A stretch of 63,514 nt of DNA, taken from Octopus bimaculoides. Its lineage: Eukaryota. Under the pieces are notes generated by a model. The model did not search any database. It had not been told where the DNA came from and saw only the letters and a list, made by a program, of their open reading frames with translations. Positions 34,291 to 59,902 of the stretch are shown piece after piece. A program made the position numbers and the translations under genes. Position 1 is the stretch's first letter; each line of letters starts with the position of its first letter. Location of the stretch: contig NC_068985.1 in assembly GCF_001194135.2 (NCBI RefSeq), forward strand, positions 39,678,024 through 39,741,537, given 5' to 3'.

Positions 34291-34971
34291 GCGTATATCT
34301 TAATTCTATTTGCGTGGCAAGCGTTGCGGAAAATATTATTAGCAACGAGCAATTTCGATTTATCGTTGAAGCCTATTCATTTTTATTTGCACCGCGTATT
34401 TTTATGAAAACCACATAAACAATATCATTACTTTTCTCTATAAATCTGTTTGGTCTTGCACTTTATGTAAGAAAGTATTAAGTTAAAGGGTAATGTTCGG
34501 AATTTTTCTGGCTTTCAGTACTCACCGTTTGATTTACTTATTTACTTATCCAAATTAATGCCATTAACCACTTTGATTTATTTCATTTAGCTCATTCTAT
34601 TTTTAATTAAGAAAGCATTGTTTACAGGCGAGTTGTTCGCCGGTGTATACGATTTTCTTCTGCTGAAATGAATCCTTGAAACCAAATCTCATACCTAAGA
34701 AATCATTATTAAAGTATTTTATGTTGCTTTGTTTTAATGTATGGATTGTTGCAGAAAACTGATTTGATTTCGACAAATAGACTCCTTGTCACAATTTAGA
34801 TTCTTCAATACCAACAGTTATGTTTCCAATGCTACTGTTCATAACAAAATAAAGCCACGAAAATCACGAGTTATTTTTTCCTCTATTCTTTTTTTTTTTT
34901 AATTATATCCTCTAATTATCAATGTTATTTATTTATTTATTATTCATTTATTTATTTATTAATTTTCAGTA

Positions 34972-35082
34972 ATGAATTCATTCCCGAAGGAACACAGTCA
35001 CTATGCGAATTATAAAGACAGTAAGACAATGTCAAAAGAAGGAACCACCTCAATGACTGAGTCGAAGCAGCTCAACGACGTG
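34972..35082 (+). CDS. Coding exon 1 of coiled-coil/SAM-domain gene (MNSFPKEHSHYANYKDSKTMSKEGTTSMTESKQLNDV)
   Basis: Acceptor ttttcag|TA at 34969/34970, ATG at 34972, 37 open codons, donor GTG|gtaaaa at 35082/35083 in phase 0, matching the next exon. The donor is weak; an alternative donor A|gtaaga at 35020 also exists. Confidence 0.55.
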
Positions 35083-35899
35083 GTAAAAACGCATTTTATC
35101 TAACATAAATTTTTCCTGGGGAACCAAGAAGCTTTGATGCGGTCATTCGCCTTGCTAGAAATAGCAAACAAGTTTCCTTCAAATTATATTTGGCTGTCTT
35201 CAGTAAGGAGGGGTATTTTGTATAATGTAATCCTTGGATTACAAAAAGACCAAAAGGCCAGCTTGAATGCCATTGACCATAAAGTCTACTCGATGAACGA
35301 TGATCAAGGGCGAAACAACAGCAACGGCCAAAACGACAAACCTTTTAAGAATCAAAAATGATTCAGTCTATCTATCTATGAAATATGTTCGATAACATGA
35401 CTGTAAGTGTCATGTTACTTCTGTTGAAAATAGGAGCAATGTATGGTATGATATGCAAGTATTCCGTTATTTAGCAATACTAACTTCAAATCTCTTCTTG
35501 CGCTTCCAGTAGACAAAGGCAGGAGTCCATTCGGTCTAACTTCATTTCCCGCACACACACACACACACACACACACACACACACACACATATATATATAT
35601 ATATATATATATATANNNNNNNNNNNNNNNNNNNNNNNNNNNNNNNNNNNNNNNNNNNNNNNNNNNNNNNNNNNNNNNNNNNNNNNNNNNNNNNNNNNNN
35701 NNNNNNNNNNNNNNNNNNNNNNNNNNNNNNNNNNNNNNNNNNNNNNNNNNNNNNNNNNNNNNNNNNNNNNNNNNNNNNNNNNNNNNNNNNNNNNNNNNNN
35801 NNNNNNNNNNNNNNNNNNNNNNNNNNNNNNNNNNNNNNNNNNNNNNNNNNNNNTTCATATTTTCATATAAAACTCTTTCACTGATCTCGATTCTGTTTT

Positions 35900-36520
35900 T
35901 GGCTGGGGCTATTGGCCGAGTAAATAGGCGTTGATGTAGCGGATATTTTAAATTTAGTCTCTTCAGTTGACCTAGCTGACGATGACGATAAGAAACATAT
36001 TATGAAAAGTCCGAAACTCGAGTACTAGGTTATCCATTTCTCTGGCGTTCTTCCTAGAGGTAAAACGAAAATTTTTCATATTCGCCGCCCGCACACATCT
36101 TTGCCTCTATACATTCAGTGAAGCTTTAGCTAGCGTCGAACGATTATCGACTGCTATTTCCAGCAAAAATTGGTACCTTGTTGTGCCACTATTTCCTATA
36201 TATATTCAGGATCCAATAGGGCCGCAGTATTTTAATAACAAAGATACCAAGGTAGAGTCGAGGGTCCTATACCTGCGTATTAACAGTATTTATTGACCTT
36301 CACATACCTACTAAAGCATATACCGATTTGTCCCTCCAGTTATGCATATATCCACAAGTACAGACCAAATATATGTATATAGTTCAAATTTACAGAAAAA
36401 CAAAAGACGAAGACGGATGTAGGAACAACAAGCAAGTGTATTAGTTTAAGTTTGGGAAAAATGGAAAAGCTTTTTACGTTTCGAGCCAACGCTCTTCAAC
36501 AGAAAGGAATAAGATGGGAA
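35900..36520 (-). mobile_element. Possible Penelope-like element remnant (GIY-YIG end and pseudo-LTR)
   Basis: Minus-strand YIGNSGTT and DVCAGGEYEKFSFY-like fragments; a TACGTTTCGAGCC..CTCTTCA motif typical of Penelope pseudo-LTRs. Confidence 0.35.
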
Positions 36521-37737
36521 AAAAATGGAGAGAGAATGGGGGGGGAAAAAAAACCGAGAGAGAAAAGCTGTGTAGAGTTCAGCGGTCCAGCATGGCAAGA
36601 TGACAGGGGGGAAAAAAAGAGGTTGAATGAAAGGGAGATAATAATAAAAAGGGTTGAACGAAATGAATAATGGTGACCTTCAATGAACTAAGGTGCGCAA
36701 GCGTGTGTATTTATAGGAGAATGGTGTGTGTTAGTGTGTATGTGTGCGTGTGTGAATGGGGGCGAGTGAGTCTGACGTGTGTATGTGTATGTGTAATGTG
36801 TGGGAGAGGACAATTTCAGCCAGTCCATAGTAGAAAATGCTGCATATGTGTGTGTGTGTGCGTGTGTGTGTGTGTGTGTGTGTGTGTGTGTGCATATATA
36901 GGCGCAGTAAGGTCTCAAATAGTTAAGAAATTCGCATCGCAGCTACAAGGTCTCGATTTCGATCCCACTGCGTGGCTCTAGGACAGATGTCATTTTTTAT
37001 AACTACGAGTTGACCCATAGCTTAAAAGTGAAAGTGAGTAGATGGAAACTCTATGGAAGCTCGCCAGTCGGGTGGATTGTACTCATACTTCAAAAGGACG
37101 TAACTTTGAACCTTTATGTTCTGAAATCCTATCGAAGTCAACTTTGTTTATAAAATAAGTACTGAGCCCGGGAATCGATATAATCGATTGCTGTTTCCTA
37201 CTTACAAAATGAATAGGGTTGATCACCTGTTGGTTGATACTTTTGGTAATCGAAAAATTAATAGACCCCACTTCACTGAATGATGTTATTGATTAGCCTA
37301 GCGCAACCGTAATCGAGCAGGCCAGTGACGAAAGCCTTTCCAATCACGACCAACTCGTCCTATATTCAAACACAGTGTACATTGAACAACATTATGTAAT
37401 GTGTTCTCTATGAAGCACTGTCAGGTGTAATATTGACTCCATTTATCTGCACTGGTGCGAGGATAAATAAATAATAATAGTAACAAATAATTAGCTGATG
37501 AATAATTAATATAATCATGAGGCGACTGCTGTAGCATGGAAAGTAAGCAACTATTTCTAGTATGTAAATAAATTATTTACGTTACATTTCTAATGTTCTA
37601 TGTAAAAAGAAGCTAAACATCATGTCATTCGTTTTCTTATCCGCAGTTTAAAACTAATTATTATACAACAATATAATATAATATATAATAATATAACATA
37701 ACAATTTAATACAATATAATAATTTGATATTATAATT

Positions 37738-57922: not shown

Positions 57923-58307
57923 GGTGGAGGCGCAATGGCCCAGTGGTTAAGGCAGCGGACTGGCGGTCATAGGATCGCGGTTTCGATTCTCAGACCGGGC
58001 GTTGTGAGTGTTTATTGAGCGAAAAACACCTAAAGCTCCTCGAGGCTCTGACAGCGGTTGGTGGTGAACCCTGCTGTACTCTTTCACCACAACTTTCTCT
58101 CACTCTTTCTTCCTATTTTTGTTGTACCTGTATTTCAAAGGGCCAGCCTTGTCACACTGTGTCACGCTGAATCTCCACGAGAACTACGTTAAGGGTACAC
58201 GTGTCTGTGGAGTGCTCAGCCACTTGTGCGTTAATTTCACGAGCAGGCTGTTCCGTTGATCGGATCAACTGGAACCCTCGACGTCGTAAGCGACGGAGTG
58301 CCAACAA
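57923..58307 (+). mobile_element. SINE family A, full length, ~80 nt upstream of exon 7
   Basis: TSD cagta(g/t)taattt. Confidence 0.92.
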
Positions 58308-58384
58308 CAGTATTAATTTATTAGCACAAGAAACCAACCATTTTATTGATTTCAGTACTTTCAAAATTTGTTTCTAATTTACAG

Positions 58385-58442
58385 ATTCTTTGGAGAAGAG
58401 CCACCGCTTCTGGAAATATTTTTACAGAAATTAGGTTACGAA
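58385..58442 (+). CDS. Coding exon 7 (58 nt; FFGEEPPLLEIFLQKLGYE, start of SAM domain)
   Basis: Acceptor ctaatttacag|A, donor GAA|gtaagt, phase 2-0; encodes a SAM helix-1-like FLxxLGxE motif. Absent from the ORF track. Confidence 0.9.
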
Positions 58443-59734
58443 GTAAGTAACAGTTCTGTATTTTGCATGTAAATAATATTTAGTGAAATTAAGAATATTA
58501 CTTAATGCTATTTTTTTTTCTGTTTTATGTTGTTGCTAGACACTTAACTTGAAGAAGAAAATTTGAATTATCACCTACAGTTTATAATTTAGGTGGAGAG
58601 ATAAATTGAAGGTTGTAATGTTCAAATCCTACACAAGATATGATATATCATCATGCGAAGGTTGAAACGGTATCGTGGTCACCGACTTACCTTGAACTTA
58701 CATTTTACTCCACAGTTCTTAACTTACCTTAGTTCTTTACATTTTGTGAGATGCACAAAGCAGCAATCAATTTGCTGTACTTCACTCCGCTTCCGTCCAA
58801 CAGACTTTCGTGCGTTTCAGGTCTTCCTAGAATGTTCGACGCTAATTGCTCTTAGACGCGCCCCACCACCAAATTTCCTTCTTCCAGTGTTCTCGTAATT
58901 GCAGTCTTTTCATTCCGAACGGTTGCCAAGTGCAAAAATGTGACCTGCTTAGTGAAATCGATGAGGTTTTCACAGTGTTTTTCAACGAGTGGAAAACTAC
59001 TCACAACCGTACTCATTCTTGAAAACAAAATCCAAGGATGCGGCGTAATGATAACTGAGTGAATGCATTTAAAAATAAATCTACTCGATCAGAGCTGACA
59101 CGAGGCTCAACGCTGAAGCAAGTTTATTATACAGTGCTTCTGTACGTTTGATTATTATGATAGAACTAGATCTTTACGTTGCACTTATTTATAAACGAGC
59201 CAACAAAAAAGACTCTTTATATAAATAATAGCCAAATCTCTCTCAAATCATACTCTACTGTCTGAAGAGCATACACCAGATAACCATACAGTTATATATA
59301 CTTTTGATGGTTATGTCTTTAATGACAGATCTACTTGATAAGGATTGATCTGAAGCCAAACAGTTTATTTACAGACGGACACAGCTCTACGTGATCGCTA
59401 GATCTAACTAAAAAACGTAGTTAAATCTTACTTGTCTCATGAACAACTGTCTTAAAAATGGACACATTGGGTTGTGTAAACCGAGACACACTATTTTGGG
59501 AAACAAATAATTTGGTCGTGGATGGAATGCTTTTGGTTATATCTCTGTTCAATTATGACTGACTTTGAGTAAACAACCACAGTTTATTTACAGGTAGATA
59601 AACCGAATTAAGGGGCTCGTCGTGATCACTATGCAATGCATAGGACAAAGATTCGAACCCACGACTGCCCTACTGGTAGCCTAATATTCTACATCGTTTT
59701 ACTATAAAACTCTCTTTTCTTCTCTTATCTTCAG

Positions 59735-59902
59735 CGTTATGTTACCAATTTCTCAAACGAACACATAGGAATGCTTGAACTGCCTTACATGACAGAAGAT
59801 CGCCTGAAGAGTATCGGGATACCAATGGGCCCAAGGCTACGCATACTCCAAGAAGCGCAGCTTTGTTTTCGACAAGAAAACTTTGATATCTATATTGTTT
59901 GA
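59735..59902 (+). CDS. Terminal coding exon 8 (RYVTNFSNEHIGMLELPYMTEDRLKSIGIPMGPRLRILQEAQLCFRQENFDIYIV*), SAM domain
   Basis: Long polypyrimidine tract + cag| acceptor, phase 0, typical SAM pattern (Y..F..E.I...L...T...L..IGI..GPR.RIL), TGA at 59900-59902. Absent from the ORF track. Confidence 0.93.
   Translation, partial: RYVTNFSNEHIGMLELPYMTEDRLKSIGIPMGPRLRILQEAQLCFRQENFDIYIV

Follow-up and report, generated by a model that had tools for sequence, protein, structure and literature searches.

SANS (USH1G) and ANKS4B carry N-terminal ankyrin repeats and end in the class I PDZ-binding motif -DTEL. In both proteins a SAM domain is followed within ~10-20 residues by the C-terminal motif, and domain and motif bind the harmonin N-PDZ1 domain as one unit (PDB 3K1R, 5F3X). 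A second described system is Tric1/HP30-1 of Arabidopsis, a tRNA-importing membrane protein of plant organelles whose SAM domain (PDB 8UCY, 8UCZ, 8UD0) polymerises head to tail into a helix of six subunits per turn, for which Gly241 of the sequence PPGPR is needed (PMC11063897). Here we analyse a gene of Octopus bimaculoides whose product resembles each of these systems in its C-terminal part. It lies in a stretch of 63,514 nucleotides (positions 39,678,024 to 39,741,537 of contig NC_068985.1, assembly GCF_001194135.2, forward strand), referred to below as the window, which is AT-rich (38% GC) and contains 22 runs of N. A preliminary description made from the letters of this stretch had proposed a hidden gene of eight exons encoding a coiled-coil, Asn-rich, SAM-domain protein of 623 amino acids with a PDZ-type C-terminus. 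We find that the locus is a gene already annotated in RefSeq with two isoforms, and that it is an orthologue within a protein family spread across Metazoa.

The RefSeq protein XP_014777184.1 ('myb-like protein P isoform X1', 807 amino acids; P0070), recovered in a family-profile search, is 100% identical to the product of the window, and the same holds for isoform X2 ('putative uncharacterized protein DDB_G0277255 isoform X2', 661 amino acids; P0066). RefSeq also contains the orthologue of O. sinensis ('putative uncharacterized protein DDB_G0277255', 755 amino acids; P0072), which is 94-96% identical. With entries for both species the gene cannot be called hidden. A reading of the locus as unannotated had been considered when two word-indexed protein searches gave no octopus protein, and was rejected once the profile search found the RefSeq entries; the early lack of octopus matches is explained by the limits of the word-indexed search and not by a missing annotation. 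Isoform X1 maps exactly onto 13 GT-AG coding exons between 32172 and 59902 on the forward strand, so that eight exons and 623 amino acids do not make up the whole gene. The exons placed within 34970-59902 by the preliminary description are real, but the gene begins at 32172 and two upstream exons fall outside that range. The coding exons of isoform X1 are as follows, with the numbering of the eight-exon chain given where the two overlap.

Coding exon 1, 32172-32189 (+): encodes MRKRQK from the start codon at 32172; donor gtaaga; 100% identical in O. sinensis; outside 34970-59902.
Coding exon 2, 33625-33754 (+): encodes VEGYSQRIEGDGQVE...NQR and ends in phase 1; splice sites conserved in O. sinensis; missed in the eight-exon chain.
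Coding exon 3, 34970-35082 (+): exon 1 of the chain; 34970 is a phase-1 acceptor and the ATG at 34972 is internal, at residue 51.
Coding exon 4, 40055-40231 (+): exon 2 of the chain; absent from the O. sinensis RefSeq model.
Coding exon 5, 40383-40484 (+): encodes AIYATDIRLAQ...TLGPDEGYPE; missed in the chain though it lies inside a visible open reading frame of 121 amino acids (40251-40616).
Coding exon 6, 43000-43175 (+): encodes QVLRGSS...EPRKLSGTRSDLKIARPY...; alternative NAGNAG acceptor at 43003; missed in the chain.
Coding exon 7, 44896-45019 (+): contains the conserved ELRKTCARLYG helix at 44912-44944; missed in the chain.
Coding exon 8, 46361-46586 (+): exon 3 of the chain; exact mapping of X1, conserved in O. 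sinensis.
Coding exon 9, 49554-49988 (+): exon 4 of the chain; DSIFDY at 49622-49639 and a degenerate PPLPPLS-type motif, SQRPHPPMSS, at 49682-49711.
Coding exon 10, 53522-53861 (+): exon 5 of the chain; acidic FDIDDTILTVE at 53563-53595, helix A at 53653-53748 and the Ser-rich motif RRPWSIASSEASS at 53758-53799.
Coding exon 11, 55094-55450 (+): exon 6 of the chain; most of helix B (KRKFQRLES...), the Asn-rich linker at 55272-55364 and the start of KLTR/FFGEEPP.
Coding exon 12, 58385-58442 (+): exon 7 of the chain; encodes FFGEEPPLLEIFLQKLGYE; SAM helix 1 begins at 58407.
Coding exon 13, 59735-59902 (+): exon 8 of the chain; remainder of the SAM domain to 59872, tail QENFDIYIV at 59873-59899 with YIV at 59891-59899, and TGA at 59900-59902.

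The two isoforms differ at two of these exons. Isoform X2 lacks exon 9, whose 435 nt are flanked by phase-1 introns, and it uses the second site of the tandem acceptor 43000/43003 of exon 6 (tttag/CAG/GTT), a NAGNAG arrangement that accounts for a difference of a single Gln between X1 and X2. Exon 4 is possibly a cassette exon; in the O. sinensis genome it keeps its AG/GT boundaries and an open frame, with six synonymous and three non-synonymous codon changes.

Pfam finds only SAM domains in isoform X1 at E<=0.01, and no Myb, CH, AAA or ankyrin domain. The RefSeq names 'myb-like protein P' and 'DDB_G0277255' were rejected as statements of identity because Pfam gives no Myb match, and these misleading names most likely stem from an Asn-rich tract at residues 674-704. 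To describe the remaining architecture, a single-chain AlphaFold2 model was built on an alignment of 44 sequences. Here, residues 1-540 are predicted to be disordered except for one short helix at 244-254, the ELRKTCARLYG island encoded by exon 7. They are followed by helix A (545-576) and helix B (606-673; coding span 53836-53861 and 55094-55271), each with a predicted local distance difference test (pLDDT) score of ~90, and by a linker predicted to be disordered (674-704), which is the Asn-rich tract of the preliminary description. The hydrophobic positions of both helices recur across the family every 3.5 residues and not every 3.6, as fits a coiled coil, and helix B, with about six heptads, probably pairs chains in this way. 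The coiled-coil region that had been proposed is thus recovered as two long conserved helices.

Although disordered, the N-terminal ~540 residues carry short conserved motifs. In the family alignments the shared elements are, from the N-terminus, DSIFDY, (S)VTPPLPPLS, an acidic FDI(D/E)DTILTVE, helix A, RRRWSIxSSDTSS and helix B (KRFQRLESHVVTLARSVAHLSSE), after which come a variable linker, the sequence LTNPxRVxKLTxFFGxEPPLL and the SAM domain. The motif RRRWSIxSSDTSS is a basophilic, Ser-rich site. The linker is Asn-rich only in octopuses; it is short in the cephalopod protein P0075, described below, and Gly-rich in other taxa.

The breadth of the family was apparent from the searches. When exons 5-8 of the eight-exon chain were used as query, 43 homologues were returned (best E=5.9e-61), and all of them are labelled 'uncharacterized' or 'SAM domain-containing'. 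This agrees with the preliminary description, which could name no orthologue and pointed to a similar coiled-coil and FFGxEPP-SAM architecture in uncharacterised insect proteins; such insect proteins were found. A family profile was then built from 24 members, against which the two octopus proteins score 1.6e-94 and 4.3e-91, and an exhaustive profile search returned 1068 clusters at E<=0.001, of which 361 reach E<=1e-10 and 111 reach E<=1e-30. Similarity of this strength lies well outside what chance would produce. The octopus protein has the features that define the family, namely a KRFQRLESHVVTLARSVAHLSSE-type helix, LTNPxRVxKLTxFFGxEPPLL, a C-terminal SAM domain and a Y-[ILVF]-[VLI] end.

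Named members come from early-branching animals (the coral Porites and the sponge Corticium), from deuterostomes (Branchiostoma, under the name 'sickie-like/NAV2', the starfish Patiria and the tunicates Ciona and Styela), from lophotrochozoans (the nemertean Lineus, many molluscs, the annelid Dimorphilus, the brachiopod Lingula and the bryozoan Bugula) and from ecdysozoans (hemimetabolous insects, crustaceans, the horseshoe crab Tachypleus, the tardigrade Hypsibius and the priapulid Priapulus). Every one of them is either uncharacterised or spuriously auto-named, and no functional name survived inspection: 'hornerin', 'PIKfyve', 'SRRM1-like', 'NAV2' and 'myb-like' stem from low-complexity or CH-domain similarity. 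Vertebrates, holometabolous insects and nematodes were not seen among the ~60 named matches; names are attached to only a fraction of the matches, and the family is therefore not established as absent from these three groups. Diptera had been guessed as the source of sequences ending in -NYNVYIL, a guess that was dropped when a cluster look-up pointed to copepods (Tigriopus). Drosophila SKIP (CG31163), considered as a possible fly orthologue, was also dropped, since the only description found for it, 'SH3/SH2 adaptor activity', fits an SH3-SAM adaptor and not this family.

The protostome orthologues, for example Pecten LOC117323886, Liolophura LOC135468570, Lingula LOC106156690, Ladona J437_LFUL014779 and Rhopalosiphum LOC132921236, have DSIFDY, PPLPPLS, FDI(D/E)DT, helix A, RRWSIxSSDTSS and helix B (KRFQRLESHVVTLARSVAHLSSE) in common with the octopus protein, as well as the LTNPxRVxKLTxFFGxEPPLL-SAM module and the Y-[ILVF]-[VLI] end. 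The octopus protein differs from them in a diverged helix B (NIVSLSHNVTCLTSQ), in the change of PPLPPLS to RPHPPMS and in its Asn-rich linker, which is Gly-rich or short in the other protostome orthologues.

More distant relatives share the core of helix B and FFGxEPP-SAM with the octopus protein (E 1e-50 to 1e-89) but additionally carry an N-terminal CH domain, which Pfam finds in the sponge Corticium, amphioxus, Patiria and Lineus and which in Porites is given by a UniRef label. The non-protostome relatives also have shorter tails, and the sponge tail lacks hydrophobic character. The mollusc and arthropod proteins, including that of the octopus, are without a CH domain. When five CH-bearing relatives were used as tblastn queries, no CH exon came to light, either in the window, which covers 32 kb upstream of the gene, or in the 10 kb that precede the O. 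sinensis gene. An identity as neuron navigator or sickie was considered and rejected: isoform X1 lacks both CH and AAA domains, and the relatives with a CH domain are not true navigators either, as an AAA domain is not detected in them by Pfam.

The C-terminal SAM domain proposed in the preliminary description was confirmed. SAM_2 (PF07647; E=1.4e-10, 41.6 bits against a cut-off of 20.5) and SAM_1 (PF00536; E=4.6e-10, 40.1 bits against a cut-off of 23) both exceed their thresholds, and the gathering scores of both are passed in the full-length protein as well. The AlphaFold2 model places a helical bundle at residues 741-798 with pLDDT 89-96 (helices 741-749, 752-760, 773-778 and 783-798), in keeping with the compact five-helix fold of SAM domains. 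Foldseek matched this model to many SAM structures with target-normalised template modelling (TM) scores of 0.7-0.88, and the neighbours include the SAM domains with PDZ-binding motif of SANS and ANKS4B, Eph (EphA7), ANKS3, BICC1 and tankyrase. The sequence KLTRFFGEEPPLL that had been noted ahead of the domain is present in the product, and the FFGxEPP-SAM module is invariant across the family.

By sequence, the nearest solved SAM domain is that of Tric1/HP30-1 (E=6e-6, 45% identity over 49 residues), followed by those of Ste11, ANKS4B, SANS and ANKS3 (E=0.004-0.006 for ANKS4B and SANS). Tric1 is the best match in both sequence and fold and shares with the octopus domain the (I)P-x-GPR-L-x-IL entry into helix 5; the remaining architecture of the two proteins is unrelated. 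This raises the question of whether the octopus SAM domain would likewise make head-to-tail polymers, so that the protein would be a filament-forming scaffold like TEL, Ph, tankyrase, BICC1 or ANKS3. Polymerisation is compatible with the sequence: the closest solved SAM polymerises through the Gly of PPGPR (PMC11063897), this Gly and the Arg two residues further on are invariant in the family, and the polymeric SAM domains of ANKS3, BICC1, tankyrase and Shank are among the top structural neighbours. However, of the five named interface residues of Tric1, only Gly241, Arg243 and Lys234 have conserved equivalents, whereas Asp235 and Gly218 do not, and the non-polymeric SAM domains of SANS, ANKS4B, Eph, Ste11 and p63/p73 are equally close. 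We therefore regard a filament-forming scaffold as possible but doubtful, and prefer a scaffold in which the SAM domain would contact another SAM domain or a different protein.

The protein ends in -YIV, as first described: Val occupies position 0, Ile position -1 and Tyr position -2, immediately ahead of the stop codon. Tyr at -2 together with Val, Leu or Ile at 0 is the class II type of PDZ ligand, seen in the tails of neurexin, glycophorin C and ephrin-B, and the octopus terminus, hydrophobic at 0 and -2 of a free C-terminus, fits this class. Among 69 family sequences, 53 end in Y-[ILVF]-[VLI], with 14 to 66 residues between the SAM domain and the terminus; conservation of the very end behind a spacer of changing length is the pattern expected when a motif depends on a free carboxylate. 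In relatives from tunicates, coral, starfish and amphioxus the last residue is V or L (-SFV, -SYV, -ASV, -LMV, -ALL). The octopus protein resembles SANS and ANKS4B in having a SAM domain closely followed by a C-terminal motif, here a candidate PDZ ligand. It differs from them in having a predicted coiled coil and no ankyrin repeats, and in the class II-type -YIV. It is not a member of the SANS/ANKS4B group, and the arrangement of SAM domain and motif is analogous only.

Alternatively, the hydrophobic terminus might not be a PDZ ligand at all, and might instead pack on the SAM domain or the coiled coil or serve as some other short motif. PDZ binding is deduced from the motif, and some relatives end in -SPP, -SPS or -SHSG. 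A packed strand would not, however, be expected to keep a conserved terminus across spacers of such different lengths, which is typical of a free-carboxylate motif, and the AlphaFold2 model leaves the nine-residue tail unstructured and undocked on the SAM domain; the residues at -2 and 0 moreover suit class II ligands. We consider a non-PDZ role of the tail to be rather unlikely, and the reading of -YIV as a candidate class II PDZ ligand is retained.

A further alternative concerns the gene model. In it, the eight-exon, 623-amino-acid chain would be the complete gene or the main isoform, with the ATG at 34972 as its start and with 40231 joined directly to 46361. The chain was rebuilt from the sequence. 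Long open reading frames are seen at 49511-50050, 53557-53865 and 55140-55472, FFGEEPP lies at 58386, a frame terminating in ...NFDIYIV* occupies 59891-59902, and tblastn with homologues backs all four of the final exons together with their junctions. For the 5' part, all open AG...GT segments in 35083-49553 that fit the proposed phases and total length were enumerated. This gave 69 arithmetic solutions, among which a single pair was outstanding in splice-site quality and reproduced the 623-amino-acid model exactly. The rebuilt exons (34972-35082, 40055-40231, 46361-46586, 49554-49988, 53522-53861, 55094-55450, 58385-58442 and 59735-59902, forward strand) total 1872 nt, which is 623 codons and a stop, with intron phases 0-0-1-1-2-2-0. 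Their junctions are textbook (donors gtaaga, gtaggt, gtatgt and gtaagt; acceptors with a pyrimidine tract and then cag), and the five exons said to be invisible among open reading frames (1, 2, 3, 7 and 8) are indeed absent from the list of start-to-stop frames of at least 50 amino acids. The chain had therefore been described accurately as to its eight GT-AG exons, their phases and its frame.

The chain is nevertheless an in-frame subset of isoform X1, consisting of its exons 3, 4, 8, 9, 10, 11, 12 and 13, and it stays in frame because the skipped exons 5-7 sum to exactly 402 nt. Such an isoform is arithmetically possible, and every one of its splice sites is good. As the complete gene or main isoform it is very improbable: 34970 sits after a strong acceptor and is joined by RefSeq in phase 1 to the upstream exons; those exons are conserved in O. 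sinensis and in P0075; the omitted exons 6 and 7 hold motifs conserved in molluscs, Lingula and the nemertean Lineus; and the junction from 40231 to 46361 occurs in no database protein found by the searches made. Specifically, exon 6 aligns with a P..ER.QGSR.E..LDR island of other molluscs and Lingula, to which Lineus has a similar string, and at exon 7 the Lineus string ELRDACNRMYGT matches 44912-44947 by tblastn, the island having the form ELRxA(W/C)xxLYG in molluscs and Lingula. A shorter model of five exons and 466 amino acids, starting from the ATG at 49511, was rejected because X1 and conservation in O. sinensis show that the upstream exons are real.

Support for the 13-exon gene was also obtained from other cephalopods. 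In the O. sinensis genome (locus L002) all 13 exons are 94-100% identical, their AG/GT boundaries are conserved throughout and 12 of the 13 have an open frame. Exon 6 (L002 ~22116-22356) contains frame-shifting indels with 7 gap columns in that assembly, which explains why the O. sinensis RefSeq model has a shortened exon 6; the indels may be an assembly error or a real difference. P0075, from another cephalopod, is a 793-amino-acid product called on a 3163-nt contig and therefore presumably comes from a spliced transcript. It is collinear with X1 over the region of exons 9-13 and shares with it the N-terminal motifs QRIEGDGQVE, which belongs to exon 2, TLGPDxGYP, present as TLGPDQGYPK at the position aligned to TLGPDEGYPE of exon 5, and xLYG. 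An exon 9 homologue was detected in another cephalopod (L001 2883-3059, Logan run ERR12374250). Here, the homologue (L001 2676-3243) has a donor, is ~130 nt longer at its 5' end and has a strong phase-1 acceptor further upstream, and the 5' boundary of exon 9 has therefore shifted within cephalopods.

Comparison with O. sinensis gave five synonymous and no non-synonymous changes in exons 12-13, which encode the SAM domain (four and none in exon 13 alone), and a ratio of synonymous to non-synonymous changes of ~1:1 in the disordered N-terminal exons. The latter is what a decaying or non-functional gene with a frame kept open by chance might show, but this explanation is hardly credible given the conserved splice sites and open frames in O. 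sinensis, the absence of non-synonymous change in the SAM exons and the orthologues conserved across phyla.

Every N run between 32 kb and 60 kb is intronic and no exon touches one. One of these runs begins 84 nt past the end of exon 9 (49988) and belongs to the following feature.

Assembly artefact, 49845-50657 (no strand): gap 50072-50430 between two 227-bp copies that are 100% identical, 49845-50071 and 50431-50657.

Owing to this duplication, the 3' end of exon 9 is found at two places, each with its G/gtaaga donor (following 49988 and 50574). The O. sinensis locus, which is free of gaps, has one copy of the segment, and there the flanks map to the overlapping intervals 31236-31532 and 31309-31605, and thus the gap is a false join of two overlapping contig ends at which no sequence is missing. 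Isoform X2, seen on a 127-Mb contig and taken as deriving from a different, chromosome-scale assembly, is identical to X1 in every shared exon, which argues against coding exons hidden in gaps. The remainder of the locus is collinear with O. sinensis apart from repeat insertions. A rearrangement in intron 9, suggested by the segment 51099-51426 being out of order relative to O. sinensis, was rejected, as the matches are copies of a dispersed repeat (the second of those described next).

Two dispersed repeats were observed in the introns and flanks of the gene. The first is short, translates as ...CSATCTLISRAGCSVDRINWNPRRRKRRS... and occurs in introns on both strands (31463-31550, 42513-42650, 48830-48948 on the reverse strand, 58201-58300 and others), with many copies in the O. 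sinensis locus too. The second (...(F/S)THKALVGPRL...; 33929-34198, 40656-40943, 43333-43584, 51184-51428, 23006-23799, 24644-24916 and others) is joined to (CA)n/(TA)n microsatellites, inside which several assembly gaps begin. The intron 35082-40055 contains pieces of open reading frame at 38259-39211 (reverse strand) that by eye resemble a mariner/Tc1 transposase (...YVWQHDSAPCHSS..., with a helix-turn-helix-like N-terminal piece). Two isolated open reading frames lie upstream of the gene at 8091-8543 (reverse strand) and 25847-26173 (forward strand), the latter transposase-like by eye; the other has weak sub-threshold C2H2 zinc-finger matches (best E=1.6e-4), and both are probably remnants of mobile elements. 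Pfam gave no match at E<=0.01 for the intronic frames at 38259-39211 or for the frame at 25847-26173, and no other clear gene was noticed in positions 1-32000 of the window. An intact tRNA-Gln(TTG) gene is found ~2 kb downstream of the stop codon at 61899-61972 (forward strand; Rfam 69.9 bits, also called by ARAGORN).

The layout of the protein makes a role as a scaffold plausible. In the mechanism that we propose, the protein would be a cytoplasmic scaffold or adaptor in which helix B, perhaps together with helix A, pairs chains as a coiled coil and thereby presents two or more SAM-tail modules. The SAM domain would contact another SAM domain, of the same protein or of a partner, or a different protein, and the free C-terminus with Tyr at -2 and Val at 0 would dock in a class II PDZ pocket, comparable to the way in which the SAM domain and motif of SANS and ANKS4B engage harmonin. 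The disordered N-terminus may add short motifs for other partners as well as a likely phosphorylation site, and in some relatives the CH domain would provide a link to the cytoskeleton (actin or microtubules).

Several observations weigh against this account. The RefSeq models are computational predictions, and the usage of exons 4 and 9 as well as the true 5' end rest on them. The pairing of chains is deduced from heptad periodicity and a model of the monomer; two Tric1 interface positions have been lost; the undocked state of the tail in the monomer model (mean pLDDT 48 at residues 801-807) fits a free ligand but does not prove one; and the sponge and tardigrade relatives are without a hydrophobic end. 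No experimental study or interaction record was found for any family member located. Even so, taken as a whole, the annotated 13-exon gene, the layout of its protein and the scaffold mechanism together give the best explanation of the locus, and one in which we have good confidence.

A wider proposal, which we make tentatively and hold to be improbable as it stands, is that the family is an ancient pan-metazoan scaffold that has never been studied, built of a coiled coil, a SAM domain and a PDZ-ligand tail with a CH domain as an optional addition, and linking PDZ-based membrane complexes to SAM assemblies. If this is true, the forms with a CH domain would tie PDZ-based and SAM assemblies to the cytoskeleton, and the cephalopod copies would be versions in which helix B has diverged and an Asn-rich linker has newly expanded. 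The lack of named matches from vertebrates, holometabolous insects and nematodes would then explain why the family has escaped study. For O. bimaculoides, the gene is already in public databases under RefSeq names that mislead, on a scaffold that holds a false gap duplicating the end of an exon, while the family to which it belongs is uncharacterised and broadly conserved in animals. The conserved module of SAM domain and C-terminal Y-I-V offers a simple, testable route to a first function for this family, by way of a putative PDZ partner.

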